Part shown: piece after piece, positions 929 through 64,000 of the stretch
Layout: each line of letters opens with the position of its first letter
Numbering within the stretch: the stretch's first letter is position 1
From: Rebecca billardiae RCC1528
Taxonomy: Eukaryota > Protista > Haptophyta
DNA length: 64,000 nt
NCBI GenBank assembly: GCA_965240325.2
Contig: OZ251226.1
Location: forward strand, 372,001 to 436,000
Reading direction: 5' to 3'
Made by a program: the position numbers and the translations under genes
Notes under the pieces: model-generated
Databases searched by the model: none
What the model was told of the DNA's origin: nothing
Seen by the model: only the letters and a program-made list of their open reading frames with translations

Positions 929-1019
929 CGCGCCGTCGTTTGTTTGCTGGCTGAGGATGATATATATGAAAAAAATCATCGCATATATATATATATATAT
1001 ATTGACGATATATATATTA

Positions 1020-10952: not shown

Positions 10953-11040
10953 AATTCAGTATAGTAGTAGTGATGTAGTGAGCAAAGTAAGACTGAGTTA
11001 GACCGTCGCGTCGGCGGTCGCGTAGTCAGCCGTAGTCTTT

Positions 11041-27336: not shown

Positions 27337-27420
27337 GTACAGTTCACTGCGCTAAGAATAAGAGACGCACACAGCTCAGGCAGGCGAGATCGACGCCCGC
27401 CAACTGTCACCGCCCATGAA
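27337..27420 (-). repeat. GTAC-ended repeat fragment (type 2)
   Basis: Reverse complement matches 10616-10683 and ends ...GTGAACTGTAC. Confidence 0.75.
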
Positions 27421-28168
27421 GCCGTCGCCGATGGTCGCGCCGTCGGAAGATTCGTTCAGCCGTCCGCCTGCGAGGCCTGGATGAGGGCTGCGGCCGCCTC
27501 GCAGCGCGCCAGCGCCCGTCGTCCTCGCCCCACCGTCGTCAACAAAAGGTCGTCGTCCGAACTCTCCGACCAGTAACTACATGATGCAATTGCAACACTC
27601 CCGTACACCGCCATCACGGCCCTTGATCTCACATCATTCTGTGGTGATAACGAACGATGGCTCGTGGTAACTTACTGATCTGCAGCCGCACCAGCTGAGC
27701 CGGACAGTGAACGTCCGGGCAAAACGGGCGCGCCACAGGCCGCACGTGAAGGCACGCGGCTCGCCTCGCGCGACGGGCGCCGTACCAAAAGGCAGTCGCC
27801 CGAGCCATCGGCTACATTGCTTACCTCACTTCCCATGCATCCGATGAATCGCTCATCATTCATCAAGTCAGTGGTCAGGCGCAAGCGAGCGTCGCACTGC
27901 TAAGCCTAAGTTCATCAGCACAGCTGCTGTCATGGCGCTATGATACAGAAGAATACGAGACGTAGGCCAGGCTGCCCGATTAGTGTCGGAACTCGGAATT
28001 CAATAGGGTGAATTACTGAATTCACTGAATTGATCCGCGCGGGCGGGCCGGACCAAGCGTCCAAGCGACCGCATCGTCGTGGCGACGAACTTCGCGCACG
28101 AAATCACGAATCAATCAGTTCACAGTCTCATCGGGCCGCGCGCCGGCCGCGACGAGGCGTCGTTGGTG

Positions 28169-31208: not shown

Positions 31209-32448
31209 GCCGGTCGGGGCGCAATCACCACGATGAGTCCCGACGACGCCCTGTCAGGGGCCGCCGAAACCAGCCGACCCGCGCAGCCGGCGTGGGTACC
31301 GTCCGGATCAGGAGATCGCATCACCGTCGTCGTCAGACTGCACCGCTCCCGACCGATCCCCTATTCCCCTTACCATACCGCAGTTCAATCTGCTTCGAAG
31401 CAGATTTGACGGCGGCCGCTGCGCGCGCTTTGCGGCCCACCCACGCGCGCCTGGGCGTTGAACACGGCTTGAGAGTGCCCAGGCATGGTCTAGCTACCCT
31501 CAGACAGCCGCCAGCCTAGTACCTCCAGCTTCACCGCCTCCACGATGGCAACGCGCGGCGGCGCCGAGCTGCCGTCGTGCTGGCTGGGCGCTCGACTGGC
31601 CCGCGACACCCGGCTGCACTCCTTGCAGCCGCTTCAAGCACGTGGGCGACCGACAAAGATGATTGTAGACAGTGTACATACTGCGCGCGTTACTCTGCGC
31701 GCGTTCGCATGACCGATCACGCTGAAAGTGCCCACCAGCCAGCCGCGCGGGACACGCTGAGGCACGGGTCGGGCTCCTTCCTTGCGGCACGCCGCACGCG
31801 GTGTGTACACCGAGTGCAAGTCAGGCAGGCGCTTCGCGGGAGTGGTGGCATCGCTTCTTCGCCTGTGTTGGCGTCGATCGCAGGCGCGACGCGCGTACCC
31901 CTCGCAAGTACACCCTCCTCGTGCTCAGTGTCACTCGCGCGGAGCCCACGGTGAGGGATCTTGAGCTCGAGGTGCAGCGTACGAGCCTACGGGCGCTGAG
32001 TAGCAGCCTACCGACCAGCGCACGGGTGACGACCGTCATCCATTATGTTATGATACCCCTCCCAGCCTCACGCCGCAGCCTGACGATCACCTCCGCAGCG
32101 GTTTGAGCACCATTCCAAATCTGCTTCGTGGCATGTTCAAACGCTCGTTTGGCACTCCGTCTGGACGCCGTGGCACGGGAGAAGGGGAAGGGCGGTGGCG
32201 GCGAGGCTCGGGTCATCGATGGGTATGGTCCCAAAGATGCCCCCAAGCGTGCGCGCGCCCGCTCGCGCCGTCTACCTGCGCGCCCAGCGCTCCCACGCCG
32301 CCGCCCACCCAAATCTGCTTCGTATATAGAAGCAGACTGCGGTAAGGGGATAGGACACCGGACGGAGCCGCGAAGACCGTTGGGCGTTTACCGTAGGCAC
32401 CCGGTTTCAAAGCCCTCCACCTGCGCGAGCGAGCTCGCGCCAGGCGCG

Positions 32449-35400: not shown

Positions 35401-37281
35401 GCCCTCCGCCCGAGCGGCGCTCTCGACGGCGCCCTCGCCTCCGTGCGCGCTGCAGACGACTGGAGCTCGCTGCTGGGCGCGCTGAGCGCTTGCTACGAGG
35501 GGCTGCTGAACTGCGAGAGCGCGGAGGCGCTGCTGGGCGGCGCGCTCGACGTCGTGCTGCCCGCCGCGCTGGAGACGGTGCGCCGGCTGCCGCCCTCGCC
35601 CGAGCTGCCCGCGCACGCGCGCACGCCCCGCGCCGCCGAGCGGCTGCGACCGCTGCGGCTGCGCGCGCGCACGCCCACGCCGCCGAGCGCGCGCACCCGA
35701 GGCGCAGCCAGCCGCTCCGGCCGGCGCGAGACGCCGGCGCGCGCGAGCTCGCCCGGAGCGGCGTGCGCGGACGGCGCGCCCGCCTCGCGCGAGGCGGAGC
35801 CTGAGCGCGCGCCGCCACCGCCGCCACTCGGCTCGCCACCGCCGCGCTCGCCCGCCGCCGCCGCTGGCGGTGGCGGCAGCCCGGCGCCGCGCGCTCGCTC
35901 GGAGCGCGCGCTCGCGCAGGCTGCGCTGCACGCGCGCGTGCGCGACACGCTGCTGCGCGCGCCCGCCGACATGCGCGAGGAGTACCACGCGGCGGGCGCG
36001 GGTGCGGGCGGCAGCGGCGGGTGCGGCCCGGTGGCCGCCCCGCGCGCCGCCGAGGCCGAGCAGCCCGGCACGCCCGCGCCGCCGTCCGCGCTGCCGCCGG
36101 CGCACCGGCGGGCGCGGCACCGCCGTGAGCTTGAGCTGCAGCTGCTGCTGCGGCTCGAGCTGGGCGCGGCGCGCGCGGACGCGGCGCGCGCGGAGGAGCG
36201 CGACGCGCCGAGCGCGCAGCAGCCCGAGGCGTCGGCGCCGGCGGGCGCGCGCACCGCGCCCGGCTCCAAGCGCAAGCGAAGCCCGGCCCGCGCGCTCGGC
36301 CCCGCCGCCGCCCGCGCGGCCGCGTCCGCGGCCGAGCTGCCCGCGCGCGAGCGCAGGGAGGTGCGGGGGCTGCTGACCGAGCTGCACGTGCTGCTGGACG
36401 AGTCGCTCGGCGGCGGCGCGCCCGCCACGCCGGCCGGGGCGGCGGGCGGCGGGCAGAGCAGCCGCTTCGAAAGGCTGCTATGCGCGCAGCTGCACGCCCG
36501 CTTCGCCCACCGGCTGCCCGCGCTGATGGCGGAGCTTCTGGATTACTTCGAGCTGAGCGCGCCGACACCGCCCGCGCGGTCGGCGAGCGTGCCGCCGACG
36601 GCGCCGCCGCCGGGCGGCGAGCGCTCGCTGGCGGCGGGCGGCGCGGGGAGTGCGCAGGAGGGCGGCGCCGTCGCCCTGCCACGCCTGCCGCCGCCGCCCG
36701 CCGCCGCCGCCGCCGCGTGCGCCGCCGCCCGCGCGCCCGGCATGCCGCCCATGCCGCCGCCGCTGCCGCCGGCCGCCGCCGCCGCCGCGCTGCCGCTGCC
36801 GCCGCGCGAATACCCCTACACGCACACGCACACGCAGCGCACGGCGCCGCACTGCTCGCGGCCCTCGCCGCACCGGCAGCGGCAGTCGATGGAGCGGCGG
36901 CAGATCAGCGTGGCGCTGCGGAAGCAGAAGGCCTCCAAGGGCGCGCGCAAGCAGCAGCGCCCGCGCGCGCGCAGCGCCGCGGCCGCCGGCGCGACCCTCG
37001 TCGAGGTGGACAAGCGAAGGGCGGTGCGGCCGGCCGGCAGCGCCGCCGACGGCCGGCTGCGCGCGCACCAGTCGGCCAAGCGCGCGCGCAAGCAGATCCT
37101 GCAGGCGCGCACGCCGGCGGGGCGGCTCGCGCGGCCGAGCATCGCGAGCACGCTCGCTGCGCAGACGCCAGCGCGGCGCGGCGGCGACGCGCTGCCGCCG
37201 TGGGCGCTCAGCCAGCCGGCGCGCGCGCAGCCGACAGGCAGCAGCTTCCTCCGCGTCGCCGAGACGCCGCTCAAGCCATGA
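32449..37281 (+). CDS. TICRR: Probable Treslin/TICRR (Sld3-related) replication initiation factor
   Basis: N-terminal 'IAVLIDGS...TVRILDH...RKWSARVY...ASLSDFAWLPVE' resembles Treslin_N. 'RRELELQLLLRLEL' resembles the Sld3/Treslin domain helix. C-terminal 'VAETPLK' resembles the CDK site. Recognised from memory. Confidence 0.6.
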   Translation: MIAVLIDGSAEQWAGGCRVPELMLATVRILDHCTTASATTVDRKWSARVYGGARGSQLAAGLERPTAISDASLDQLETLLDKVARAHATAQAPLAGWPALVDACKASLSDFAWLPVEVSDSGEEVDTEAERHIVIVAPELLGGGDAAESAAHARQLDALVSRRAGAARARVHWVDTSAAPPRDRARAQAAAEARRLVERGGGGVIALDWLVRTRHAPIPLPLLMRCALGGAPQGAGQPSSGAHAPAEPEPTKREAKGVGAGGAAARPAGSGADALAVTLLADDGRVLCDGLVAHAVGAALLARPADDPAATVAHGAERRAAGAGSGAPPRAQLRLQLVATACLASLAPALLDARSAGYALLTASAAGGAAARCAWVALLCSLAEAGAAAIVREADPPARERGALSDASGALDAAPPSADEPRPLLALRPLSAGAACAHRLSVCAPRVPCLPTPTPAPSSAAPPDPHAPALVGSAPAQDLAAAAQPAAGPRTTRTRARAAAAARAEGAAYGAAPSPRGSTAAGARQPAPRTRAAQAQEAAPKRASAEPPVHARLSGSERAAEAVATTTAPAGARGAEPAPRSLPDDDGCAESGRAESGCAASLREEDALARALLWRATDWHLPALLRDARGGADDASATAAAAVARSAEAPTAAADERAPLLPTACQPQGRQAAGVEQAPSAGGCEPRAAEDCALGGGGGGGGGGAGDSVTAEAPPPRAARGAQSGAAQRPDPSLLPPGLQAVPLAHALGAAAQPRPRGRAAASAAARKRSRAPERRAEARRPRPARAPEPSAHAALCTAEAPSVAVAAVAVPAAEQLSLRSRLEHACALRAERLVARAAAAAHDAELERSAAARAAACARVPAATATARATPVEAEAGSERARVGACTGLVVYPGSSPTPAPPPPAAEPHAAAPPPPPRAVALGAAAADSHAAAAASGAGRAADAGGGVACRALTLCAAPGALSALSAPSAPLGALGPAPPAPAALRPSGALDGALASVRAADDWSSLLGALSACYEGLLNCESAEALLGGALDVVLPAALETVRRLPPSPELPAHARTPRAAERLRPLRLRARTPTPPSARTRGAASRSGRRETPARASSPGAACADGAPASREAEPERAPPPPPLGSPPPRSPAAAAGGGGSPAPRARSERALAQAALHARVRDTLLRAPADMREEYHAAGAGAGGSGGCGPVAAPRAAEAEQPGTPAPPSALPPAHRRARHRRELELQLLLRLELGAARADAARAEERDAPSAQQPEASAPAGARTAPGSKRKRSPARALGPAAARAAASAAELPARERREVRGLLTELHVLLDESLGGGAPATPAGAAGGGQSSRFERLLCAQLHARFAHRLPALMAELLDYFELSAPTPPARSASVPPTAPPPGGERSLAAGGAGSAQEGGAVALPRLPPPPAAAAAACAAARAPGMPPMPPPLPPAAAAAALPLPPREYPYTHTHTQRTAPHCSRPSPHRQRQSMERRQISVALRKQKASKGARKQQRPRARSAAAAGATLVEVDKRRAVRPAGSAADGRLRAHQSAKRARKQILQARTPAGRLARPSIASTLAAQTPARRGGDALPPWALSQPARAQPTGSSFLRVAETPLKP

Positions 37282-40600: not shown

Positions 40601-40666
40601 TCATAGATATAGATATATAGGTATATATATATATAGTAGCAGTAGCAGAGAAGTATAACTATATAT

Positions 40667-42242
40667 ATGACCGCGTTCCGCGGTCCTTCCGTAGAACCAA
40701 CGTAGTTAGAGGCCCGCGGTGCACCCTCCGTTGCGCCTCGTGCCGGCAGAGCGAGAGCGCGCGCCACTGCTGCGGCCCCGCCCCCCGGGCCCGTGCGCTC
40801 ACTCACACGGCGCTGCGCAGCCGCGCACCGAGAGGCGAGACCGAGCGCGGAGCTCGGGGTGGAACGAGGCGAGCGGCGGGTCGCGCCTGCCGCCGCGCGT
40901 GCGCGCCTGCTCCACCGCGCCACCGTGCAGCGTGCTCGCCCGCCGCCTCCTCCGCCGCGTCGGCCTCGAAGCAGCGGCGGCCAGCCAGCCGACCGAGGCT
41001 GAGCCCGTGCGTGCTCACTCACCCGGCGCGGTGGCGCCCTCGAGTCGACGGCCGTCTACTCCACAGCTGGCTGCTCGAGCTGCTGCACGGGGCGTCGCGA
41101 CGAGGGCGCCGCGCGCGCCCAGCCAGCGCGTCCGTCGCCGCGTCGCGCACGGCGCAGCGCGTCGAGCTCGGCGCCGCGCTTCCGGGCCAGCTCGGCGCCC
41201 AGCGCCTGCGCGCGCACGTGCTCCGATGCACGGCCCGAGTCAGCTGGGCGCCCGGCTGCGCGACCGAACGGGAACCGGCGCGCGTTCCACGACTGTCACT
41301 GCTCCTGCTTGTCCTCACGCTGCTGCACCTCCACGCCGCCGTCGACCGAGTTGCTAAGGAGGAGCTCGCGCTCGACGTCACGAGGAGCGAGCTCGCGTGC
41401 TCGAGCTCGCCCTTCAGCCGCGCTAGCTCCGGGCGCATCCGTTGCGTGCTCGCGGCGCGCTCCTCCTCTAGCAACGAACGAGCTTACGCGTAGTGCTCCG
41501 GACTCGGCTCGCCCTTGCGCGCTCCTCCTCGAGGACGAACGCGCCCGCGCGGGCAGGGCCCGCGCCCGGGTAAAAAACCTGCTGTGTTCGGCCTCGGCCC
41601 TCGGGCCGCCATCCAATACCGGGTGCCGTTCGTCATAGTTCAGACTCGGCCAATCGGTAATCGGATGCGACGCATCATACTCGCCGGGAGCGCAAAGGTT
41701 CGTCGTCAGTAAAGTTGAGTACTTGACGGATTTTTGGTAGGACCTCCATGCATCACTGCGCTTGGGTCTCGTCCCATTTGGCAGCGCGCAAAGGTTCGTC
41801 GTTAGTAAAGTTGAGTAATTTGGCAGCGCGCAAAGGTTCGTCGTTAGTAAAGTTGAGTACTTGACGAGACTTTTTGCCAGGAGCCCAGGACCTCCATCGC
41901 ACGCGCTTGGGTCATCGTCCTATTTGGCAACATTATGGTCGTATGAAGATTTACAACAAATCGCAGATTCGTTCACCCAGATATACTGACAAATGCACGT
42001 CCACAGGCTCACGTCCGTCCGTAGATACGGAATTGGAGCGGGCGCGGCTATTTCGTCAATCGAGTCTTGCTAATGCAAAGCAATGGGCCAATGTACCCCT
42101 CGAAAAAGCGAAAACTCACCCTCCAACAGCCCTCAAAATCGTCCCCCGTCCCCTTTTCTTTGATCAAAAGATCTTTTTGACAACGTAGTGAGGGCCCCCG
42201 GCGGGGCTCCACGCTACGCGCTCCGCCCTGCACCGCGGGCCA
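40667..42242 (-). mobile_element. Non-autonomous Helitron2/Helentron-like element, copy 3
   Basis: Both ends are the reverse complement of copy 1. ~41780-42242 matches 1020-1445, and 40730-41200 matches ~2420-2840. Contains repeated GCGCAAAGGTTCGTCGTYAGTAAAGTTGAGTA units. Confidence 0.75.
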
Positions 42243-42543
42243 TAATAATAAACTAAGCTAGCAGGCAGTAGCAGCGCAGCAGACAGAGTTGAGCAGACAG
42301 GCCGAGCAGTGTCACGTCATGCACGTGCGCCCGCTGCCTGACTAGTGCCTGGCCGGTACATAGCCGCTGGGACCCCGTCAGCCACGGGTCAAGCCGTCAG
42401 CCGCTGGCGGCCATCTTCTTCGGCCGATGCGCCTGACGAACGAGTCCGCAGTGCCGTCGTACAGTATCCGGTATTGGCGGCATCATCAGCAGATGACGAG
42501 TCGTTGTCGAGCACGCCGGCACCGCGGCACACTCCTTGGCGCA

Positions 42544-45052
42544 TCAGCTGACGATCGTCTTGCTGACGGCCTCGCGCACGCGCGCGTGGTCCAAGAGGTC
42601 GGCCTGCGAGAGCGCGACGCCCGCCTGCTCCTCCTCGCTCACCGGCTGCGCCATGAGCTTGAGGAAGCGGCGCGCAATCATCACACCCATGTCTGCGCGC
42701 GCACGCGCACGAGCGCGGCGCCCGCCGTGCCCGCCGTGCCGGCGGCGGCGCGTGGCGATCAGCCCGCTCCGTGCGGCGGCCGGGCGCGCGTTAAGTGCGG
42801 CGCGCGCGCACACGCGCACACGCGCACGCGCGCACGCGCGCACCGGTCGAGAGGTTGAGGTGCGCCTCCGTCATGTGCTGCCCGATCCACGAGGGCAGCT
42901 TGTTGCGCTTGTCGACTCGGTTGAAGCGCGCGTCTGCAAACACGATCAGGCCGTAGTCCGTCTTGCCGCGGATCACGCGCCCGGCGCACTGCGCGGCCTG
43001 CCGGATCGCGTCGAACGTGATGAAGTCCGCCTCGTTGATCTGGCACGTCTCCGCCAGGTACTCGAGCCGCGCCGTGAGCGGGCGCGACTTGGTGTACTGG
43101 AAGGGCACGCCGAGCAGCAGCACCGCGCGGCCGTAGTGCCGGTCAAAGTCGACGCCCTCGGCGACCTTGCCGCGCGCGACGGAGAGGAAGACGGCGCCGC
43201 GGCCGCAGTCGCACGCGCGCTTGTAGTTCTCGAGCGCGAGCGTGGTCTCGACGATGTCGGGCGTCTCGATGAAGACGAGCTTGTGCTCGAGCACGCGGTC
43301 GAGCACGGTCGGCAGCCGCCGGCCCTGCTTGCCGTTCCCGTTGCGCGCGGGCTCGGGCGCGGTCGCCCAGCGGCGGATGACCTCCTCCATGTAGAGGTAG
43401 GAGGGGAAGAAGGCGACGAGGCCGTCGGGCACGTGCTCGGACATCTGGATGAGCAGCTCGCCGTACGCGCGCACCGTCGCCTCCTCGGAGCGCGTCTCGA
43501 AGCGCGTCGACAGCGGCGTCTGGTCGGCGGCCCTGCAGAGCACCAGTGGGCAGATGCACTCGCGCCGCAAAGACATGGTGAGCGTGCGCACGACGCTCGG
43601 CGAGAAGCGCAGGAGCTTGGGGTAGAGCTCGATGGGCGAGAGCGTGCCCGAGGTGATGATCACGCTCTGGAAGCGCTCGAACACGTGCTTGATCGCGATC
43701 GACGCGTCGAGGCAGCACAGCTGCAGCACCGGGTCCGGGAGCGACGGCGTGCGGTCGTCCGACGGCTCGAGCAGCACGCTGAAGCCCGACTCGAACGTGG
43801 CGCACATCGTGCCGAACTCGGCGACGAGGGTGAGCGGCTGGAACTCCTGCACGTTGGTCACCTCGAGCGTGCGCAGCAGCGAGCGCAGCCGCTCGGACGC
43901 GAACTTGAGCGGCTTCGCGTCCACGTTCGCCTCCTGCTGCAGCCCGGCGAGGAAGCGCGCCGGCCGCTCGACCGTCACGGTGCGCTCGGCCGCGCACCGA
44001 TCGAGCCGCGCCTTCACGTACCGCACGACGCGCTGCATGAAGGTGACGAAGTGCTCGGCGCGGCGGATGTTGCCCGGCACCGCCTCGTTGAGCATCGACT
44101 CGGGCAGCACCGGGTTGGCGCGCAGCTCGTCCGCCGCGCCCGCGCCCTGCGGCAGCGCGCCGCTCTGCGCGAGGCCCGACACCAGCCGCTGGTACTCGCG
44201 GTTCAGCCGCTCCGCGTCCACGCGCTTGAGCTTGGCGACCTCGGCGTGGAGGCGGCCGATGTTGCGCTCGCACGCCTGGAGCGTCGCCTCGCGGAAGTTG
44301 ATGCTCATCACCTCGATGCACACGTTGTCGATGTTGTGCGCCTCGTCGAACACGATGATGCACTCGCGCTGCAGCGACTTTGAGATCAGCCCCGCAATCT
44401 TCGGGTCGAGCAGGTACTGGTAGTTGTACACGACCACGTCGGCGAAGGAGACGGCGTGGCGCGCGAGGAAGTACGGGCACCAGCCGCGCCCGCGCGCCAG
44501 CTCCTTCAGCTCGTCCAGCGTGTACACGCCGTGCTCCAGCGCCGAGTCCGTGCCGTGCGCCTCGAGCGCCTCGTAGAAGGGGCACAGCTCGACCGCCTCG
44601 GGCTGGCTCGCGCCGCGCGCGCGCACCCACGAGGCGGTGAGCGAGCGGCAGCGCGTGTCGACGGACTCGCGCTCGGACTCCTGCGACACCGTCTCGTGGA
44701 TGCACATGTTCTTGCGCGACGACAGCCCGATCGCGAGCAGCCGGTGCGAGCGCTCGGCGCCGCGCAGCCTGTCGCGGTGCTTCTCGAGCTGCTGCAGCTC
44801 CTCGAGCACCTTCTCCATCTCGGGGACGGTGCGCGTGCAGTAGACGAGCTTGCCCACCTCGGGGTGCGCGCGCTGGTACGACGTGACGAGCGAGAGCAGC
44901 GTCACCGTCTTGCCCGTGCCGGTCGGCATCTCGAGCAGCGCGTGGCCGCGCGCGTCGAGCGCGCGCTTCACCTCGAGCATGTACGCGTACTGCTCGGGGT
45001 AGATCTGCGCGTACGGGAAGTCGACGGTGAGCCCGTCGAGGACGATCTCCAT
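42544..45052 (-). CDS. XPD: TFIIH helicase XPD/RAD3; exons 42844-45052 and 42544-42692
   Basis: FPYAQIYPEQYAYM, LEMPTGTGKT, Fe-S cysteines (NMCIH, CRSLT, CPFY, WCPYF), FDEAHNID, TSGTLSP, ARGKVAEGVDF, AQCAGRVIRGK. Intron 42693-42843 gives LST-D-MGVMIARRFLKLMAQP. Confidence 0.97.
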
Positions 45053-45421
45053 GCTGGCGTGCGTGCGCGCGCGCGCGCGAGCCCGAGCGGTGCTGGTCGC
45101 CGCGGGGGAAGCCACTCTCGCCTCACGGCCACTACTAGTACACGCCGAGCGCCATGGCCGTGTCCCGGCGACCCGGCCAAAGCGCATCCGGATTCCGGGC
45201 GCACCATCGTCGTCCGGATTTTTATTGGATTTTAGCCGAGGACCGCCAATAATTGTTATTAATTGATTGCATGGACCGACTCAGGCGACTGTCGTCGACG
45301 ACTCAGACTGGCAGCCATTCGTGCGTCAGCCTGGCGCTTGGCAGCAAGGCGAAGCGCCGCGCCGCGCCGCAGATCACATTGGCGACAGAATCGTGCAGTC
45401 TGCGACACACATCCTCGATGA

Positions 45422-46405: not shown

Positions 46406-47434
46406 CCCCCCCCCCCCCCCCCCCGCCGCCTGCGTGCAGTCGTGCACGCGGTCGACTCCTTGTGGTGATACGGTACAGTACTAGTACGCGGGTATTGCTG
46501 TATGTGGGGACTTCTCACATAATTAAATGACGTGTCGTCATACATCAAACGATCATACTAGTAAGGGTATCGGCGGCGTAATTTCGGTGTATACAGTAAT
46601 TACTGAGACTACATCTGCTTGATTAATACAGTATGGGGGTACAGTCTTGGCACTGCCATGGGTGAGGGTGGTGGTTGGTTGGGGGCTGGCCAGGCCACCC
46701 GTCCCAAGAAGCTCCTGAACCCGTCCCAGTCCGGGGGCGAGTTTAGCGTCCATGGACGCTAAACTCCGCCGGACACAGTGCGCGAGCTGAGCCTCGAGGC
46801 GAGATGAGCACGCAAGGCCCGTCACAGCGCCCGTCGCGCGCGCTTGACTGCGGCGGCTGAGATGGCTGGAGCGGCGGCGCGTTGCGCTCATCCTCAGTGC
46901 ACACTTGTAAGCGACCTTCGGCGCAGCAGACATGTGCCGCCTTGGGCCCTCCTCCGCCTGCTAGCGCGGCTCGACTGCAACTCGGTCGCCAAAGCCAAGC
47001 ATTGCCTACTGAGTCCGCTTCTGCCCGCGACACGCGCTTGAATGGCGTCTTGAGCGCGCGCGCATTGGAAACATATACACTGGCCCTCTCTCCAGACAGC
47101 GCGCGCCTGGCTCCTGCAGCGTACTCTGTGCGATGAAGCGGTGGCGTAGGCGCCTGCCGGCCTGTTGTTGAAACGCACCCGCTCGGCTAGTGAGCATGGG
47201 CGCAAAAGACGCCGGGAAGCCGAGACATGAGCGCCGGAAGGGGTTCCGAGGTACTACCAGATCAGCCCACCTGGCGCGCCGTCGCACAGCCCTCGCCTAC
47301 GCGCACGCGCACGACCAGAGCGAAGCTGCCCGCGTGGCGGACGGCCATTTCTTTCAAATGTTTTCGCTGAGTCAGCGGGCCGGCCCGCGACGGAGCTTGA
47401 CGTACTGGGCTGGGACGGGTGGTAGGGCTGGAGG

Positions 47435-50400
47435 AGGCCACTCCACCGAAATCGTGCCCGTCCCGGGCTAGCCGCTCCACTGGCGTCCCGGGCTAGGCCG
47501 GGACGCTCCGAGCGCGTCCCGGGCTAGCTGGCGCAGCGGGAGATAGTATTGAGCTCATAGGCGATGCCGCCGCGCCGCGTGCGCGCGCTCCGTCTCGCGC
47601 TGGCTGCGGCCGGGAGCGCGCGCGGCAAGCCGGCGCGTGCGGTCGGGCACCGGCGCTGAGGTATAGTGTGCCCATCCGCGCCCTCGGCTTGTGTCTGCGC
47701 GCCCTCCTCCGCCGCTGCGGGGCGCGCGTGTGGTCGCGCTGCCTCGCTCCCTGGGCGCACCGAAAGCGCGAGCGCGCAACGGGTCACGTGTGGCGTGTCG
47801 GACCCAACGCGTGCTCGCCTGGCGTGGGCTTTGGGTTCGTCATGGCCCTGGTCACGCGCGACGCCGGCCGTGCCCAGCCTTCTGACCGCGCGCAGCGCGC
47901 GTAGCACTGGCAGTCCCAGCTGCAGTCGAGCTGACCCGTCGGGGCTCGGCGGCACCCAGCCACTGGTAGGCGGCCGTGATCAGTCCACGCGTGAGTTAGA
48001 CGGCGGCTACACATCAGGCAGGTCGCGCTCTGCCGCGTGCAGGGCGGTTGCACAGCCACAAGTGCCCCCGCGATCGCGGCGCGCTCAGGTACGAACCAGA
48101 GCGCCGCAGTATTTTGTTGCATGCGCGCCGCCGGCAGGTGGCGAGCTGGGCCGTGCTGGTCGGTGTGGCTGGCGGGCGCGCTCGCGTGCGTGGCATGAGC
48201 GAGCGCGCCGCCGCCCTCGCCTGCCGCCCACGTCGCGCGCCGCGCGGCTGCGCGGCCGCGCGGCCTCCGTCGCTTTGGCGCTCGCGCGGCCGGCAGCTCC
48301 AGTGGACATCGGACACAGTGGCTGCCGTGGGCCAGCTGAAGAACTGGTCCTTACTAGTTCGCGAGCGGGGCGGCGGGTGAATAGGTTGATGCCGGCGGTC
48401 TTGCGTCTATGAGTGCCCGCATGCCACGTGTCTCCTCGTATCTTGATGTCCGGCAGTGCTCACGGATTCTGGGGTGGTACAATAACAGCTCAGCAGGCTG
48501 ACTGTCGTCCGCGGCAAACCTCACCCTGCGGGCTCGGTAGATGGACAATGCCCATGGCTGGTCACAAATCACAGGATACGTGAGCAGAAGGTATGCGCAC
48601 GCACCGAGATGTTGCGTCGCCCCTCTTGCCCGTGTTGCGGAGACCCAGTGGCGTACGGCAGCCTGCACTTGCGCCAGAGTCGGCCACAACCGAGGTGCGC
48701 AGCTCGAACGCTGCACACGCTCAGTGAGCGGCACCGCCTCGGCTTGCGAGCGGCTGCGTGCGCACGCATAAGACGACTGGATGCTGTCGCATAGGCACAC
48801 GCCCTAAGCGAAGTGGGATGGTGCTTAAGGTGGCGTCAGTTGTGACGTTGGCACCTGCCACGCCCACGGCGTCCGTTGAATCGACGGAGGCAATGATGAA
48901 GAGCCCGGATGAAAGCGCTTTACTTAGGAGCGTCAAGCGAGTCCTGACTGAATATACAGCAGTCCCTGATGAGGCCTCGAATTCGCACATTCGTGCCGAT
49001 TTGTCACGGGCTGGGGCTGCCGGAGCAGCACCCATCTGGCGGGTCCGTGCGAGGGTACACGCGTGGTGCGACGAAGCCATCACGCATCATCCACAAATCA
49101 CGGCGCAACACGCAGCTCAGTGCACGGAGGTGCTCGGCTGCTGCCAAGTACGATACGCTAGCCAATGACAAGGCCGAGCCACGGCTACAGTATGCGCGCG
49201 CTGATGGGCAGGGCCTGGGGCTGTGCGTGACAGGCCCGTCACCCGGTGTGAGCCAACTTCCGCTCATCTACGGTGGCCTCCGAACACTGGTACACCACGA
49301 TGCAGCGCTGTTCCAGTCTCAGCCGACATGCTCTGGGCACGCACCCGGTCACCGCCAGCCAGAGCCAAAGTACACAGTAGCTGTGCTGCTGTGCATCCAT
49401 CTCGTCATGCGGTGATACTCATGCCGATGCTGCGCGCTCACGGCTTGATGGCATGGCAACGGCAGTGACCATGCCCTACTTTGCAGCTAGCTGCTCCGTA
49501 TGCCAAGATGCTGTATGAATACTGCAGCGTATTTGCCAGCCAAGCGCAGTGGCGCCGGTGCCGCCTTCCGGCCACGCTGCCATCGGGAGCTGCCGGCCAC
49601 GCGAGCGCCGAAGCGACGTAGGCCGCGCAGCCGCGCGGCGCGCGACGTGGGCGGCAGGCGAGGGCGGCGGCGCGCTCGCTCATGCCACGCACGCGAGCGC
49701 GCCCGCCAGCCACACCGACCAGCACGGCCCAGCTCGCCACCTGCCGGCGGCGCGCATGCAACAAAATACTGCGGCGCTCTGGTTCGTACCTGAGCGCGCC
49801 GCGATCGCGGGGGCACTTGTGGCTGTGCAACCGCCCTGCACGCGGCAGAGCGCGACCTGCCTGATGTGTAGCCGCCGTCTAACTCACGCGTGGACTGATC
49901 ACGGCCGCCTACCAGTGGCTGGGTGCCGCCGAGCCCCGACGGGTCAGCTCGACTGCAGCTGGGACTGCCAGTGCTACGCGCGCTGCGCGCGGTCAGAAGG
50001 CTGGGCACGGCCGGCGTCGCGCGTGACCAGGGCCATGACGAACCCAAAGCCCACGCCAGGCGAGCACGCGTTGGGTCCGACACGCCACACGTGACCCGTT
50101 GCGCGCTCGCGCTTTCGGTGCGCCCAGGGAGCGAGGCAGCGCGACCACACGCGCGCCCCGCAGCGGCGGAGGAGGGCGCGCAGACACAAGCCGAGGGCGC
50201 GGATGGGCACACTATACCTCAGCGCCGGTGCCCGACCGCACGCGCCGGCTTGCCGCGCGCGCTCCCGGCCGCAGCCAGCGCGAGACGGAGCGCGCGCACG
50301 CGGCGCGGCGGCATCGCCTATGAGCTCAATACTATCTCCCGCTGCGCCAGCTAGCCCGGGACGCGCTCGGAGCGTCCCGGGCCTAGCCCGGGACGCCAGT

Positions 50401-50444
50401 GAAGCGGCTAGCCCGGGACGGGCACGATTTCGGTGGAGTGGCCT
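47435..50444. mobile_element. Foldback-type element, ~865-bp TIRs, 7-bp TSD CTGGAGG
   Basis: 47435-~48300 is the near-perfect reverse complement of ~49586-50444. CTGGAGG occurs at 47428-47434 and 50445-50451. GTCCCGGGCTAG is repeated subterminally. Confidence 0.9.
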
Positions 50445-50547
50445 CTGGAGGCTTCGGCCGCCAGCCTGCGGCACCCGGAGCCCGTTATAAAGGGGAATTT
50501 AAAAAAAAAAACAGTCAACAGGGCGCTCGCAACGAAGGCTGCGACCC

Positions 50548-52118: not shown

Positions 52119-52290
52119 TGCCTCCGAGCGCGGGGCGGCCGCTTGCTGCAATGGCCGCCTCGATGAGGTGCGGCAACGCGCCACTCACCTGCCTGCGCCG
52201 GTCTGTTTTGTGGCGGTGTCTTTGTGCAGTGTTGGATGGCGTTAATCACGCCTTAACCAAGTGTGCACGTTAAATCATAGTAAACTGTAC
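52119..52290 (+). repeat. GTAC-ended repeat (type 1) with complete 3' end
   Basis: Ends GTTAATCACGCCTTAACCAAGTGTGCACGTTAAATCATAGTAAACTGTAC. Confidence 0.8.
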
Positions 52291-55050: not shown

Positions 55051-55233
55051 CAGCAGATGAAGACTGCGGCGTCGTCGTCGAATAGTAGTGACGGACGAAC
55101 GACGTCATCGCGCTGCTGCATGTAGTAGCCGTCAATCGTCATACAGTAGTCATACACTCAGCATACTGAGTTTATATCGCGATCATCATCCCGCGCGCTA
55201 ATAATTATATGAATTCGCGCGTCGATATATATA

Positions 55234-56058
55234 TGTCGAAGGCGTTGAAGTAAGCCCGAAACGACTGAGCTAAATCGGTTCGCGCGAACCGATTTAGCTC
55301 AGTCGTTTCGGGCTCTTCAACGCCTTCGACATAACCGTAAGTCTCCTGTGGGACACCCCGCGAGGGGCTGTAGTCCCGTCCAGTGTTCTGACGGATTTGT
55401 TGTCGAGGTTTTTCTCTCCCCGCCTGGTCTCTCCCAGGTGTTCCACCCTGCGTGCTCGTCTGCTCTGCTCTGGCTTCGTAGAGACTCCGTCTTTTGTGGG
55501 CGGTGAGCCCTTCTTGCTGCTCTGGCTTTGTGAGGCTCTTTCTGTAGTCTTTGTTGTTGACCCGGGCGACTGTACCCGGAGGTTGCGCGTCGCGGACCGT
55601 GCTCGTTTTTCTGTCGTCTTTCTTTGTCGGTCATCCTCTTCGTGCTCCCCTCTTTCGTTCTATCGTCTTTTTGCCGACTCCTCGCTTTTCATTCCCCCCC
55701 GGAGCCGCGAGGCTCTCGCGAGGTCGAAAGCGCTTCGCGTGAAAGGCCAAGAGTTGCCCGCGTCGGTCGGTCGCTGGATTCGAACAGGTGACTTTACGGT
55801 TGTGTCGAAGGCGTTGAAGAGCCCGAAACGACTGAGCTAAATCGGTTCGCGGGACCCTGCGAGAGACCAGGCGGGGAGAGAAAAACCTCGACAACAAATC
55901 CGTCAGAACACTGGACGGGACTACAGCCCCTCGCGGGGTGTCCCACAGGAGACTTACGGTTATGTCGAAGGCGTTGAAGAGCCCGAAACGACTGAGCTAA
56001 ATCGGTTCGCGCGAACCGATTTAGCTCAGTCGTTTCGGGCTCTTCAACGCCTTCGACA
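55234..56058. mobile_element. 825-bp element with ~200-bp TIRs each ending in a ~96-bp palindrome, inserted in (TA)n
   Basis: Palindromes at 55234-55331 and 55963-56058. Inverted arms at 55332-55433 and 55861-55962. A fifth copy of the 48-bp half-site lies at 55803-55850. Termini are TGT...ACA. Confidence 0.9.
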
Positions 56059-56174
56059 ATATATATATATATGTCTAGCGCCGTCCTCGAAGCGCCTGCG
56101 CCATATCCGCGACGGCTGACTCCATCACTGGACTATTAGTATTAAGACTAAGTCACTTACTAAGAGTAAGACAC

Positions 56175-59100
56175 TAGTCACCTCAAAGATGTGCGGGTGC
56201 CGTTTCTGGACGCTTCTAGCCTTGATCTCCTGAACATTTGTAGGGGAGATGAGTTTAGTCAGTCGACTGACTAAACTTTTTCTTCAATCAAGGCTCCTCA
56301 CGACTAGGCGCCGTCTTGCACGAAATCCCTATCCTCTCGTCTGGCCACGGCCCTTGGTCTGGCGGTCTTGCATCAAATCCTGGACTCGCGAGGGCAAGGG
56401 GTGGGCCCTCTACCTACGGCCGCCAAACCGGTAATACGCGTTCTGAGCCCGGTCTGGTTGCGGGCGGCCCGGGGCCGCCGCGCCCCGGCTGCCGGGGCGG
56501 CGACTCGGGGAGGCGAGCGTTGGCGCGCGCCCGCCGTGGCCGCGGCGGCAGCGGGGTCGTTGGGCCATCCCAGGGGTATCTGAGCCTCTCGACAAGGGGC
56601 CGTGGCTGCGCCTCGCGTGGGCTGTACTGCACGCGGGCAGCCGACACGAATGCGATGCGCCATCCAAGCGCGAGCCCGAGAGCTTTCGCGACACGGGTGC
56701 TGCGCGAGCACGTCTGAAGGAGCGGGCAAGGTCTCGAGAGGAAGCAGGGAGACCACAGAAGTGCTAGCTCGCAACGACAGTCAGGGAGCGCGAGCCGCCC
56801 CGCTGCGCTGCCTGAGCCGGTCGCCCCACGGGCACGGCCACGGGCCACGCGTGGCGGGCAAACGTGACTGCCGCGCGGCAAGGCTTGGTGAGTGTGTACA
56901 TGCTTCAAGTGGCTGGTCGCTGGTAGAGCTGCTGCATCCCAATCGCGAGCAGCCAGTAACAGCGACTCGGCCGCGCCGCCGCGGCCGTGCTCCGCAGTTC
57001 TGGTGCCCGCGCGGAACTGACGGTCACGGTTGCGCACCCGCGGGCGGCGAGACCAGTCAGTGGGCCGGCTCTGCCGCCGTCCCTGAGCGTGACCCGCAGT
57101 GGCGTCGCCGGGCTTGCAGGGGGGTCTAAGCCGGCCGCCCGCCCGAACCGGAGCCTGGCACGACCGTATCCGGCCCGCGCCGCCGCGCGCTGCCACAGTG
57201 GCCGGTGGCGGTGGCACGCGTCGGGCCCGCGCAGCCCGCGCGGCCCGCGCCGCCGCGCGGCCCGCGAGCGCGGGCCTCATCCGACGAATAAGACTGACGA
57301 GTATCACGAACGAATATGGCGCCAATGCGGGATAGTGCGACTGGAGTGCTGAGCCGTGACTGACTACGTCATGCCTACCAGCCGTACGTACATCCCCGCC
57401 CACTATTCGGATGGTAGCCCGCGGTCGGCGGCGGCGAGCCGCCGATGATTGTCCCGCCGGTCGCTGTGACATCCTTCCACTTACGCCAGGTGAAGCGCAG
57501 GCCGATGACCGACTGGAAGTCGGTGAACAGGACGAGCTGGTGCGGGCTCTCGGCGAGCGTCGTGGCGGGAGAGAAGATCTCGGCGTAGTTGTCCGACGCG
57601 TTGCCGTTCAGCGGAGCGATCGAGAAGAAGGGCCAGCCGGGGGCGAGTGGCAAGCTCGCGTGAGATGCGAGCTCGAGCTCGTACCGGCCGCGCAGCCAGC
57701 GGCCCAGGCGGTCCTCGGCGAAGAGGTCGATGACGGCAGCATCGTACGCGGTGGCATCGACCTGGACCGATGCGCGCTCGGCTGCGTGCAAGCCTCGGCA
57801 GTGCGCGACGACGCGCGTGAGCAGCCGATCGAAGATCGCCGCCTGCTGCTGCTGGCGGACGCGAATGTGCATCGGCTCCCGCCACAGGAACTCACGGTAC
57901 CGCGCGACGAGGTTGTGCACAGCCTCCGCCGGCGGGCGGTACAGCTTCGCGCCGTGCTCGATGGCGACGATGGTGACGTGGCGATACACCTTACTGCTGG
58001 CGAGGCAGCCCGCGACACGGCGCTCGGACTCGACGCACGCCGCAACCAGATCGGCGTCCGCGGCGATGCCAATCTCATCGCGCCCTGCGCGGCGCGCGCG
58101 GGCACGCGCGCAGGACGCGCGTCAACACGGGCGGCGGGGGGGAGCGGGCACGGCGCCCGCGCAGCGGGATCCGATCGTACCGAGATCGAGCACGTGCTCG
58201 TCCGCCTCCCCGAGCAAGCACGGCCGCAGCGGGTAGCCGCGCTGCTGCCCGTCCTCCGCAGCCCCTGTCGTCGTCGGCAGCACGATGCCGCCGTCCGGCT
58301 GCTTCCAGGCCTTCAGGCCGACACCGAACTCGAATGGCATGCGGGCGGTCGGGAGCTGCGCGATGACCTCCTCGGGTGGCTCGGTCAGATTCATGTTCGC
58401 CACATGCAGCACGTTGCGCTTGGCCTTGAACGGCTGCGGCTCGGACTCGCCCTGCCTGGCATCACAGACGACGGGGCGGACGACGACACGCGGTGTTGGC
58501 GCGCCGCGGGTATGCGCGCGCAGGGAGGGATCGCGGGCGGGGCGGCGCACCTCGGGCGCTTGAACGCGGTCCATGCATTCACGAAGAAGTCCAGTGCGCC
58601 CCCGCGCGCGATGAACTCCGCAAGGTTCTTCCACACCATCACCTTGCCATGCACCGTCTCGACCTCGATCTCCTCCTCCTTCCAGTTGCCGACGTGCTCG
58701 TAGACCTCCGCAGGGTGGTAGTCTGCGGTGCGCGTCTTGCCAGGCAAGTCCTCCACGAAGTAGAACCACTTTACCATGAGGGTCACTGACCCCGCGACGA
58801 CTTCTTGACGACGCGGCGCACCTGCGCGAGCCCGGCGCGCTCCGAAGGCCTGCCGTTCTTCTGCAGCCACTGCACGACGACATGGTCTCCGATTCCGATA
58901 TTGATGCCGCGCCAGATGACGCCGACATTCCGCAATCGTCCTCCCCGCGTGGCGGCGGTGACGAGCTCCGGCGCGGTGGCCGGCGGGAGCTCCCCGCTCC
59001 GTCCATGACTTCGACAAACCGCGAGGGGCCGTTCGACCGGCGCTCAGCCGGAACGGAGCGACTCAACCAGGCTCGGCGGTTGCTCAAAAACCTATTCATG

Positions 59101-59261: not shown

Positions 59262-61040
59262 TCATACTCGTCGCCGCCATCGTCTGTGGCCTCCGATCTT
59301 CCAAGGGGCTGCTTGCAGCTGCAGCCCACTCGCCTGCTTCAACTTGGCCTTGCTGCCTGCGTTGAAGTGCCTGCCCCACAGGCACGCGTCGTCGTCGCCA
59401 CGCACGCGCACCGTCGACGCGGCCAGCTTGAGCGCCGCCGCCAGCCGCTCGCGCAGCACTTGGACGTTGGTGTACAGCTCCGCCCTCGTGGCAGGGCGGC
59501 CCACGCGCTGGCCATGGCGCACGGCGGTCGGGTGCCGCGGGTCGACCCAGCCGTGCGCGAGAAGGTCGGCACCCGAGATGAAGTGCGCCGTCGTGTGCGC
59601 GCGCCACGCGCAGCCGCGAGCGCTCGGCCGCTGGCCGGGCGCGCACTGCGCCGCCTTGGGGTGCGAGTACCAGTGGCCGACCACGCGATCGGTCGCGTTG
59701 GCGAGGGGGACGAACTCCTGCAGGAACTCGATGCCCTTCCTCGCCGCGCGAGTGGCCGCGTCCGCCCCGGCGTCCGGCGCCAGCCGCGTCTTCCGAATGA
59801 CCGGCGGCGGGTCCACCACCTCCATCCGGCCGACCGCGCGTCGCGCCGCCCGCTCGTCGCCGTCGCAGCCGCACGTGTACAGAGGGAAGTCTCGCGGGTA
59901 CGTGCGGTCGCACCGCGCGGTGTCGCGGCGCGCGATCACGCGGTCTGTGGCGAGCGCGCACTCGCACGCGCCGCGCCAGCACTCCGGCTTGCTCTCGTCG
60001 ATCAGGTTGTACTTGAGCGGGTCCTTCTTCCGCCGCGTCGCTCGCAGCCACTTGAAGCAGCGCGAGTTGCAAGAGAGGTACTCGCCATACTGAGGCACCA
60101 CGCCGGCCGCGCGCCATTGCACGCAGCGGTGTGAGATGGTGGCGAGCGAGGCGTTGGGGAAGGGCGCGCGGCGCGGCGAGCTCAGCGGCGGGTCGGGCCG
60201 CTTGTCGAGGCTGAGGATGTACCGCGAGTTGGTCAGCAGCCACGCGACGCCGCCCACGTCTGCCGTGTTGGCGTCGGCCAGCTGGTCGGGGCCCTCGCAG
60301 CCGCCGTTCGGGCAGAAGTCAGTGACGCGCAGCACGCCGGTCGCGACCACGCCGTGCGGCAGCGTGCGGAAGTGCTCGACGGGCGACCACGGCCACGTCC
60401 GCCCGCGCGGGGGCGCGTCGTGCGCGCGCACGCGCACGGCGTACTGCGTCGCGGGCCTCAGGGCCTGCAGCAGCAGCCGTTGGTTGAGGTGCGGCGGCGT
60501 CGGAAACCCGATCTGGTGCTGCAGCGCCGCGCGCGGCGGCGGGTCGCGCACGGGGACGATCTCGGGGCCGTCGTCGGCGCCGGAGTGGTTCGACTGCCAC
60601 CACTCCACCGTGTACACCGTGTGGCCCCGTGAGCCTGGCGTCGGCAGCCGCCAGCTCAGGTCGAGCGTGGTCGAGGTGGGCGCCGCGTGCAGCTGCACGA
60701 GCCCCACCTGCCCGGGCGCGAGCGGCTCCGTCCGGCACGAGCAGCAGCGCTCGCGGCGCGACCACACGTCGTCCTTGTCCAGCGTGCGCGTCCAGAGCTG
60801 GTACGTCGTCTCCGGCACCAGCCGCGAGACGTGCAGCGCGGCCGCGTCGCGCTTGTGAAACGTGAGGGCGAGCTGAGGCTGGCAGCCCGCGTCGCCGGCG
60901 CAGAGCTGCAGCTCCGTGGCCAGCCCGGAGGGGCTGCCGAGAGTGACCGAGAGCGCGCTCGGGCCCGCCGCGACGCAGCTCCCGCCGGCGCGGACCGACC
61001 CCACGGCGCACGCCGAGAGCAAGAGCGCGCGGATCAGCAT
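59262..61040 (-). CDS. Secreted FN3-domain, Cys-rich protein (copy A)
   Basis: Signal 'MLIRALLLSACAVGSVRA'. FN3 motifs 'VSRLVPETTYQLW', 'LDLSW' and 'LQALRPATQYAVRVRA'. Cys-rich C-terminal half. Confidence 0.75.
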   Translation of the reverse strand: MLIRALLLSACAVGSVRAGGSCVAAGPSALSVTLGSPSGLATELQLCAGDAGCQPQLALTFHKRDAAALHVSRLVPETTYQLWTRTLDKDDVWSRRERCCSCRTEPLAPGQVGLVQLHAAPTSTTLDLSWRLPTPGSRGHTVYTVEWWQSNHSGADDGPEIVPVRDPPPRAALQHQIGFPTPPHLNQRLLLQALRPATQYAVRVRAHDAPPRGRTWPWSPVEHFRTLPHGVVATGVLRVTDFCPNGGCEGPDQLADANTADVGGVAWLLTNSRYILSLDKRPDPPLSSPRRAPFPNASLATISHRCVQWRAAGVVPQYGEYLSCNSRCFKWLRATRRKKDPLKYNLIDESKPECWRGACECALATDRVIARRDTARCDRTYPRDFPLYTCGCDGDERAARRAVGRMEVVDPPPVIRKTRLAPDAGADAATRAARKGIEFLQEFVPLANATDRVVGHWYSHPKAAQCAPGQRPSARGCAWRAHTTAHFISGADLLAHGWVDPRHPTAVRHGQRVGRPATRAELYTNVQVLRERLAAALKLAASTVRVRGDDDACLWGRHFNAGSKAKLKQASGLQLQAAPWKIGGHRRWRRRV

Positions 61041-61190
61041 GCCGATCTGGTCCTTGATCAGGTTCCGCCTTTGATTGGTGATGCACTTTGTCGGCGTGCA
61101 GGCCCTCTCGCTGCGCACCTGCGACGGCCGCCCCGTCGCCATGTCGTACAGCGTTGTGCTCACCATCACCTATTTACCTCGCTCGTCGCG

Positions 61191-61370
61191 TTAAGGCGTG
61201 ATTTAATCACGCCTTAACCAAGTGTGCACGTTAAATCATAGTAAACTGTACTCATTCTATGATTCATTATTATAACGACACAGGTAGGACGACGCGGGTC
61301 TCCTGATTCGTCGTACTCATTCTATGATTTACCGACACAGGTAGGACGACGCGGGTGTCCTGATTCGTCG
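61191..61370. repeat. Tail-to-tail GTAC-ended repeat fragments
   Basis: A type-1 3' end (to 61251) shares its GTAC with a reversed type-3 unit, which is duplicated (61248-61322, 61313-61370) and similar to 21104-21139. Confidence 0.7.
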
Positions 61371-62567: not shown

Positions 62568-64000
62568 TCACCATCTCTGGCCTCCGATCTTCCAAGGGGC
62601 TGCTTGCCTCTGCAGCCCACTCGCCTGCTTCCTGAACCTGGCCTTGCTGCCCGCGTTGAAGTGCCTGCCCCACAGGCACACGTCGTCGTCGCCGCGCACG
62701 CGCACCGTCGACGCGGCCAGCTTGCGCGCCGCCGCTAGCCGCTCGCGCAGCACTTGGACGTTGGTGTACAGCTCCGCCCTCGTGGCAGGGCGGCCCAAGC
62801 GCTGGCCGTGGAGCACGGCGGTCGGGTGCCGCGGGTCGATCCAGCCGTGCGCGAGAAGGTCGGCGCCCGAGATGAAGTGCGCCGTCGTGTGCGCGCGCCA
62901 CGCGCAGCCGCGAGCGCTCGGCCGCTGGCCGGGCGCGCACTGCGCCGCCTTGGGGTGCGAGTACCAGTGGCCGACCACGCGATCGGTCGCGTTGGCGAGG
63001 GGGACGAACTCCTGCAGGAACTCGATGCCCTTCCTCGCCGCGCGAGTGGCCGCGTCCGCCCCGGCGTCCGGCGCCAGCCGCGTCCTCTGAATGACCGGCG
63101 GCGGGTCCACCACCTCCATCCGGCCGACCGCGCGTCGCGCCGCCCGCTCGTCGCCGTCGCAGCCGCACGTGAACAGAGGGAAGTCTCGCGGGTACGTGCG
63201 GTCGCACCGCGCGGTGTCGCGGCGCGCGATCACGCGGTCTGTGGCGAGCGCGCACTCGCACGCGCCGCGCCAGCACTCCGGCTTGCTCTCGTCGATCAGG
63301 TTGTACATGAGCGGGTCCTTCTTTCGCCGCATCGCGCGCAGCCATCCGAAGCAGCGCGAGTTGCACGAGAGGTACTCGCCATACTGAGGCACCACGCCGG
63401 CCGCGCGCCACTGCACGCAGCGGTGTGAGGTGGTGGCGAGCGAGGCGTTGGGGAAGGGCGCGCGGCGCGGCGAGCTCGGCGGCGGGTCGGGCCGCTTGTC
63501 GAGGCTGAGGATGTACCGCGAGTTGGTCAGCAGCCACGCGACGCCGCCCACGTCTGCCGTGTTGGCGTCGCCCAGCTGGTCGGGGCCCTCGCAGCCGCCG
63601 TTCGGGCAGAAGTCAGTGACGCGCAGCACGCCGGTCGCGACCACGCCGTGCGGCAGCGTGCGGAAGTGCTCGACGGGCGACCACGGCCACGTCCGCCCGC
63701 GCGGGGGCGCGTCGTGCGCGCGCACGCGCACGGCGTACTGCGTCGCGGGCCTCAAGGCCTGCAGCAGCAGCCGGTGGTTGAGGTGCGGCGGCGTCGGAAA
63801 CCCGATCTGGTGCTGCAGCGCCGCGCGCGGCGGCGGGTCGCGCACGGGGACGATCTCGGGGCCGTCGTCGGCGCCGGAGTGGTTCGACTGCCACCACTCC
63901 ACCGTGTACACCGTGTGGCCCCGTGAGCCTGGCGTCGGCAGCCGCCAGCTCAGGTCGAGCGTGGTCGAGGTGGGCGCCGCGTGCAGCTGCACGAGCCCCA
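62568..64000 (-). CDS. Secreted FN3-domain, Cys-rich protein (copy B), 5' part outside window
   Basis: Near-identical to 59290-60705, with scattered substitutions and a different C-terminal end. Confidence 0.8.
   Translation of the reverse strand, partial: GLVQLHAAPTSTTLDLSWRLPTPGSRGHTVYTVEWWQSNHSGADDGPEIVPVRDPPPRAALQHQIGFPTPPHLNHRLLLQALRPATQYAVRVRAHDAPPRGRTWPWSPVEHFRTLPHGVVATGVLRVTDFCPNGGCEGPDQLGDANTADVGGVAWLLTNSRYILSLDKRPDPPPSSPRRAPFPNASLATTSHRCVQWRAAGVVPQYGEYLSCNSRCFGWLRAMRRKKDPLMYNLIDESKPECWRGACECALATDRVIARRDTARCDRTYPRDFPLFTCGCDGDERAARRAVGRMEVVDPPPVIQRTRLAPDAGADAATRAARKGIEFLQEFVPLANATDRVVGHWYSHPKAAQCAPGQRPSARGCAWRAHTTAHFISGADLLAHGWIDPRHPTAVLHGQRLGRPATRAELYTNVQVLRERLAAARKLAASTVRVRGDDDVCLWGRHFNAGSKARFRKQASGLQRQAAPWKIGGQRW

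Follow-up and report, generated by a model that had tools for sequence, protein, structure and literature searches.

A palindrome-tipped, non-coding inverted-repeat element in a Pavlovophyceae genome is a candidate young, non-autonomous DNA transposon

Positions 55234 to 56058 of the 64-kb stretch of DNA analyzed here (hereafter the window) are occupied by an 825-bp element (forward strand, TGT…ACA ends) that we regard, with moderate confidence, as a young, non-autonomous, foldback- or MITE-like cut-and-paste DNA transposon with long inverted repeats, residing in an AT run of a Pavlovophyceae alga. As in non-autonomous TIR transposons, inverted repeats are present, the unit is small, and it is devoid of coding capacity. 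What sets the element apart is that its inverted repeat opens with the terminal module arranged as a perfect palindrome. To our knowledge, almost no DNA transposons have been curated in Pavlovophyceae genomes. The genome paper of Diacronema lutheri reports mainly LTR and LINE repeats (PMC8379373). In these compact and very GC-rich genomes, an apparently young element with long inverted repeats offers a handle on which transposase families are active. Since a perfect, loop-less 96-bp palindrome is normally an unstable structure, its survival at both tips of one element is a small puzzle that bears on the origin of inverted-repeat modules and on the tolerance of palindromes in this alga. On present evidence, we are dealing with one odd element and no new mechanism.

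The element is built around five copies of a 48-bp module, termed A, in which 48 of 48 bases are common to all five. The sole departure is a 2-nt TA insert in the outermost left copy, A1 (positions 55234 to 55283, forward strand), which lengthens this copy to 50 bp. A1 is followed by the inverted copy A2′ (55284 to 55331, reverse strand), and the two form a left terminal palindrome that is perfect save for the insert. At the other end, A4 (55963 to 56010, forward strand) and the inverted, outermost right copy A5′ (56011 to 56058, reverse strand) form a perfect, loop-less palindrome with 48-bp arms that spans 55963 to 56058. Every copy of A starts with TGT followed by C and G, which fits the terminal consensus TGTNR. 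The inner part of the left arm (55332 to 55446, forward strand) comprises a linker, x, and a segment termed B, the last ~15 nt of which differ from the right arm. Its inverted copy, consisting of B′ and linker x′, forms the inner part of the right arm (55851 to 55962, reverse strand). Between the arms lies a unique, pyrimidine-rich core (55447 to 55773, forward strand; 64% pyrimidine and only 8% A) that is non-coding and shows no significant fold. It is followed by x* (55774 to 55802, forward strand), a diverged copy of the sequence 5′ of A4 with a weaker likeness some bases further upstream, and then by the internal extra copy A3 (55803 to 55850, forward strand), which abuts the right arm on its inner side and has the same base as A4 at 48 of 48 positions. 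Read from the outside in, the order is thus A, A′, linker, B on the left and A, A′, linker, B, A′ on the right.

This arrangement bears out the layout A A′ B – core – A – B′ A A′ given in a preliminary description of the locus, together with its statements that the copies of A are essentially identical except for a 2-nt insert and that loop-less 96-bp palindromes stand at both ends. Of the segment lengths given there, the 48 bp of A holds, whereas B is 107 to 115 bp when the outer linker is included (rather than ~102 bp), and the core is 327 to 364 bp, according to where the boundary of the arm is set (rather than 370 bp). The same description called the element recent, and it does look young. 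The terminal inverted repeats measure 205 and 203 bp, and their outer 200 bp carry no substitution and a single 2-nt indel. Several differences between left and right are confined to the innermost ~15 bp of the arms.

An echo of the B′-end sequence ahead of the internal copy of A, also noted earlier, is confirmed: the ~35 nt located 5′ of A3 are ~75% identical to the sequence 5′ of A4. Identity therefore changes in a sharp step at the TGT edge of A3, from 48 of 48 bases inside to ~75% just outside, and this step marks module A as a discrete unit. Because identity drops both at this edge and within the inner ~15 bp of the arms, the architecture of the element, including the position of A3 beside the right arm, has a greater age than the perfectly identical arms would suggest. 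All copies of A, like the outer 200 bp, have been kept or made identical, which selection on A as a binding module or gene conversion between copies might accomplish. Chance cannot produce this repeat structure, as a 30-nt stretch of A had no match in 100 shuffles of the window and no other palindrome with arms longer than 14 bp is present in the 64 kb. Beyond the element, no further copy of A occurs in the window.

As a single strand, the whole element is predicted to fold into a 205-bp panhandle (−343.8 kcal/mol, z = −37.6), and the left and right palindromes form hairpins of −58.3 kcal/mol (z = −17.6) and −61.9 kcal/mol (z = −18.8), respectively. Module A alone folds no better than its shuffled versions (z = −1.2) and has no internal arms, which rules out a branched hairpin or nested sub-palindrome within A of the kind hinted at by a tandem-repeat match inside the palindrome. 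B and pieces of the core likewise show no folding beyond that of shuffled sequence. GC3 is 0.52 to 0.62 in the longest ORFs of the element, compared with 0.79 to 0.95 in ORFs that passed a coding-like filter, and a search of the element's ORFs against Pfam gave nothing above cut-off. Against Rfam, the element gave only sub-threshold matches, to microRNA-precursor models. Any perfect hairpin yields such matches, and we discarded a microRNA-type gene call. A captured exon in the core was also ruled out, given that the core carries no coding signal and resembles nothing elsewhere in the window. Since there is neither a coding GC3 signal nor a Pfam or Rfam match above cut-off, the 825-bp element is non-coding, in agreement with the first account of it.

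The element is embedded in (TA)n, as had been proposed. On the left it is bordered by an AT run of 9 nt (55225 to 55233) that begins and ends with A, and on the right by a run of 14 nt (56059 to 56072) that begins with A and ends with T. TA runs make up 0.34% of the window, yet both flanks of the element are TA runs. The 9 nt to the left of the element equal the first 9 nt to its right and are a candidate target-site duplication, although duplication and microsatellite repeat are indistinguishable here. The last n bases of the left flank equal the first n bases of the right flank only for odd values of n, from 1 to 9. When a microsatellite slips, it gains or loses two bases at a time, which leaves this parity unchanged. 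Given the TGT/ACA boundaries, duplications of TA or of 4, 6, or 8 bp do not fit the flanks unless a junction has gained or lost 1 nt; duplications of 3, 5, 7, or 9 bp are possible. For comparison, the duplication lengths of known superfamilies were taken from PMC10045372 and PMC2836005. The target fits RTATAY and the ends fit TGTNR.

Flank comparison also bears on the unit that was inserted, as only the whole 825-bp unit has flanks that match over more than 2 nt. The left palindrome is bordered on each side by TA and nothing longer. For the right palindrome, TA borders one side and AT the other, and its flanks have at most one base in common. A 256-bp unit extending from A3 to A5′ (55803 to 56058) has flanks that share at most one base. 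These observations favor the whole element as the unit of insertion, while smaller units could still be the basic members of the family.

Smaller units figure in an alternative that we hold to be unlikely, in which the element is a composite or nest either of 96-bp A–A′ doublets or of 256-bp units like that between A3 and A5′, which is bounded by inverted repeats of 48 to 55 bp. Two such units would be inverted around a captured core, or the locus would be a rearranged MITE. Each A–A′ doublet does have outward TGT/ACA ends like those of a minimal element, with the left one flanked by TA on both sides, and the right arm by itself resembles a small, complete element between inverted copies of A, whose 55-nt arms are 96% complementary. 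The behavior of A as a discrete unit with an abrupt TGT edge also suits this account. However, two independent insertions that exactly abut the ends of the middle part are improbable, and the identity of the arms runs beyond A through the linker and B. In addition, TA does not follow the right doublet, the left arm has no inner copy of A, and neither a solitary A–A′ doublet nor a separate 256-bp unit was found in the window.

If the element is instead a single transposon, then A would be a putative binding module for a transposase encoded elsewhere in the genome, and the outermost pair of A ends would be the pair that is cut. Upon integration, AT-rich DNA would be cut with an odd-length stagger, of which 9 bp would point to a Mutator/foldback-like system and 5 bp to a Ginger2/TDD-like one. 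The terminal palindromes may have arisen by inverted duplication of the terminal module, and the inner copy A3 could be an old subterminal site that selection or conversion has kept identical. Mutator-like and Ginger2/TDD-like are the two superfamily assignments that fit best, and a choice between them calls for an autonomous relative. The transposon interpretation gains support from the presence, in the same window, of other transposon-like repeats beside TA runs and of a 3-kb element with long inverted repeats. Several points count against it. A single copy is seen in the window, whereas the core property of a transposon is to be repeated across the genome. A simple MITE model would lead one to expect neither the one-sided position of A3 nor the perfect identity of all five copies of A. 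Finally, the scanned ORFs of the window include no transposase, and the searched collections yielded no relative.

Judged by codon-position GC, a plus-strand gene ends near position 55050 and a minus-strand gene near 56905, which places the element inside a ~1.9-kb gap between two convergent genes. Long, perfect inverted repeats in such a position could yield double-stranded RNA. The window has a GC content of 59 to 83%, and its genes are eukaryotic and, in the cases checked, free of introns. Among them is a complete XPD/Rad3 helicase gene (42791 to 45187, minus strand) whose product has its nearest relative in the haptophyte Diacronema lutheri (84% identity); other Pavlovophyceae-like homologs are 82 to 84% identical and that of Prymnesium is 61% identical. 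This ranking assigns the window to a member of the Pavlovophyceae. At the DNA level, the XPD region (42540 to 45052 of the window) is 82% identical to that of D. lutheri, and the neighboring genes are not common to the two loci, which indicates that local gene order is not conserved. Within the 22.5-kb XPD locus of D. lutheri, only XPD aligns with the window, and the locus holds no site orthologous to that of the element, no likeness to A, B, or the core, no long palindrome, and none of the other repeat families of the window.

Two very long ORFs occupy DNA of 80 to 83% GC in the window (12731 to 20407, minus strand, ~2560 codons; 32107 to 37281, plus strand, ~1725 codons). Both contain many short in-frame repeats and show strong GC3 periodicity, and neither has a Pfam domain. 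Tandem paralogous genes with a fibronectin-III/purple-acid-phosphatase N-terminal domain are located at 59262 to 61169 and 62568 to 63998 (minus strand) and have in common a 300-nt stretch that is 95% identical between them.

The window also carries other repeats. A second non-coding element of ~3 kb (47434 to 50445) has inverted repeats of ~880 bp, of which 760 nt are 100% identical. Short repeated GC-rich motifs are found near its tips, its ends are unrelated to module A, and the 5-bp direct repeat TGGAG stands on both of its flanks. Another family is represented by two long copies in opposite orientation (1015 to 3201 and 40658 to 42250) that are 92 to 100% identical in blocks, both of which adjoin TA runs with TA at both junctions, and by an end fragment at 11033 to 11079. 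A 424-aa ORF in the copy at 1015 to 3201 has no match in Pfam. A further dispersed repeat of 71 to 137 nt, 96 to 99% identical, occurs at four sites in both orientations (10613 to 10827, 22132 to 22230, 27352 to 27422, and 52119 to 52255). Short perfect palindromes with arms of 10 to 14 bp and loops of 0 to 1 nt are scattered through low-GC intergenic DNA (20660 to 20682, 31387 to 31406, 46739 to 46766, 56252 to 56277, and 61190 to 61218). The one at 56252, located 194 bp to the right of the element, has a 12-nt stretch (with one gap) in common with module A. Chance would provide ~0.01 palindromes with arms of at least 13 bp per window.

Fold-back repair is known to occur at TA repeats and palindromes, and the element could conceivably have arisen in place, if fold-back or template-switch repair at a TA run produced an inverted duplication that merely mimics a transposon. 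We judge this non-mobile origin to be quite unlikely. A local event would agree with the single copy seen in the window and with the perfectly identical arms, which are as expected just after a duplication, and short perfect palindromes are over-represented in the intergenic DNA of the window. Nonetheless, the flanking TA runs are very short (9 and 14 nt), and five copies of A with one and the same TGT edge require several nested, exactly bounded duplications. The diverged inner edges indicate an architecture older than the current identity of the arms, and both the matching flanks and the TGTNR ends would have to be coincidences.

Relatives of the element were sought by exact words. An inner word of A had no match in viral contigs and none in metagenome contigs, and words from B, from the palindrome center, and from the core had none in viral contigs. 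The terminal 20-mer of A was absent from viral contigs and gave 16 matches in metagenome contigs and 16 in prokaryote genomes. We rejected these 32 bacterial matches as relatives and attribute them to chance, given that each is a single match and none extends beyond 25 nt. The longest ATG-initiated ORF of the element (105 aa), used as a proxy for other copies, returned nothing in an exact look-up or in a word search. The absence of relatives says little; at 82% coding identity, the level seen with D. lutheri, little likeness in non-coding DNA would be expected anyway. Among the 29 window ORFs scanned, there was no transposase, whether of the mudrA type, the integrase type, or any other, and neither the element nor the scanned ORFs of the window contain genes for a Rep/HUH nickase or helicase, a polymerase, a recombinase, or a resolvase.

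These searches weigh on the proposal, made when the element was first noted, that it might be a self-priming hairpin replicon. In its fuller form, the proposal has the element descend, as an integrated copy or as a relic, from a linear DNA whose hairpin ends are covalently closed. Each A–A′ pair would then represent a hairpin telomere in its replicated duplex state, processed either through rolling-hairpin nicking or through a telomere resolvase acting in trans. The formal layout is that of such replicons, with a palindrome followed by a non-palindromic part of the repeat at both ends. Each palindrome folds as a very stable hairpin, and copying from end to end would account for identical terminal modules. 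Beyond this formal resemblance, the proposal finds no positive support. No gene for replication, nicking, integration, or resolution was found in the element or in the scanned ORFs of the window, A has no internal arms, and viral contigs gave no match. Moreover, A3 and the duplication-compatible flanks are left unexplained, and an 825-bp non-coding DNA would be entirely reliant on a helper that is not seen. We consider this origin highly improbable. A similarly slim chance is assigned to a variant in which the A–A′ pairs are end-resolution sites and the element is the chromosomal form of a small DNA that leaves or replicates as a linear, hairpin-closed molecule, processed at the palindrome centers by a nickase or telomere resolvase supplied in trans. 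If true, such a trans-processed, hairpin-ended element would represent a non-autonomous class so far undescribed in eukaryotic nuclear genomes.

An artefact of assembly or library preparation, in the form of fold-back chimeras or polishing errors, is scarcely probable; perfect palindromes that lack a loop do pose difficulties for sequencing and assembly, but fold-back artefacts are usually of the scale of reads rather than 48-bp arms placed symmetrically at the tips of a 205-bp repeat, and they do not account for the 2-nt asymmetry of the left palindrome or for a fifth copy of A in a diverged context.

The non-autonomous transposon that we favor can be set beside several known systems, none of which it matches by sequence. 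A rolling-circle transposon of the Helitron type, which lacks inverted repeats and target duplication and has a single subterminal hairpin at its 3′ end, is ruled out by the 205-bp inverted repeats and the symmetric ends. DIRS elements combine inverted terminal repeats with an internal stretch related to the termini, and they encode a reverse transcriptase and a tyrosine recombinase. The element resembles them in the first respect, and the preliminary description drew this analogy. The analogy fails, however, because the element has no ORF or domain for either enzyme and is far too small. Furthermore, A3 is complementary to A5′ and identical to A1, and thus is complementary to one terminus only, unlike the internal stretch of DIRS. 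Homotelomeric rolling-hairpin (parvovirus-like) replicons and hairpin-telomere replicons share with the element, at both ends, a palindrome followed by a unique stretch within the inverted repeat. They differ from it in that the element is an 825-bp piece of non-coding chromosomal DNA, with an extra internal module and transposon-like flanks.

Tc1/mariner elements, including palindromic MITEs, were rejected because the left flank ends with TA and the right flank starts with AT, such that a TA duplication requires a 1-nt indel. The Sleeping Beauty group of Tc1-like elements carries an extra half-site on one side only. Elements of this IR/DR type have inverted repeats of ~200 bp with binding modules at their outer and inner ends (PMC5224488). 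The element has repeats of similar length, modules in outer and inner positions, and an extra site on one side only, but the modules of the Sleeping Beauty group are direct repeats within an arm, whereas those of the element form an abutted inverted pair.

We know of no description of terminal palindromes for Ginger transposons. Ginger2 elements have TGTNR termini, inverted repeats of 50 to 180 bp, and an RTATAY target, with duplications that are mostly 4 bp long and are 5 bp long in TDD-4 and TDD-5 (PMC2836005). The TGTNR ends and the AT-rich RTATAY target of the element agree with the Ginger2/TDD group, and a 5-bp duplication is compatible with its flanks. Unlike in Ginger2, a 4-bp duplication is barred by flank parity, and the repeats of the element reach 205 bp. 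The TGT…ACA boundaries on which a Ginger affiliation had been suggested are thus confirmed and the lead holds for ends and target. It does not hold for the 4-bp duplication, and the scanned ORFs of the window yielded no integrase-type gene.

Among described families, we found none whose inverted repeats are tipped with perfect, loop-less palindromes of 96 bp. Mutator-like elements generate duplications of 9 bp (8 to 10 bp). MuTAnT, a Mutator-like element of Medicago, is non-coding, contains four similar segments that can fold back, inserts almost exclusively into TA microsatellites, and generates 9-bp duplications (PMC4486113). Tm1 and FARE elements have composite or palindromic long ends, and the composite repeats of Tm1 are tandem 14-bp units (PMC3169594). 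The element differs from MuTAnT, FARE1, and Tm1 in that it has no sequence similarity to them, resides in a haptophyte host, and carries its module as a perfect loop-less palindrome at the tip. As with all three, its body is short and non-coding and its long, near-identical inverted repeats consist of repeated segments that fold back. With MuTAnT in particular, it shares a TA-microsatellite target and inverted repeats of at least 100 bp, and its flanks allow a 9-bp duplication, which is unprovable in an AT run. The earlier verdict that the element fits none of the known types cleanly was therefore too strong, as modular long inverted repeats, a non-coding body, and insertion into TA microsatellites are all known among foldback- and Mutator-type elements, as described for MuTAnT (PMC4486113) and for Tm1 and FARE (PMC3169594).
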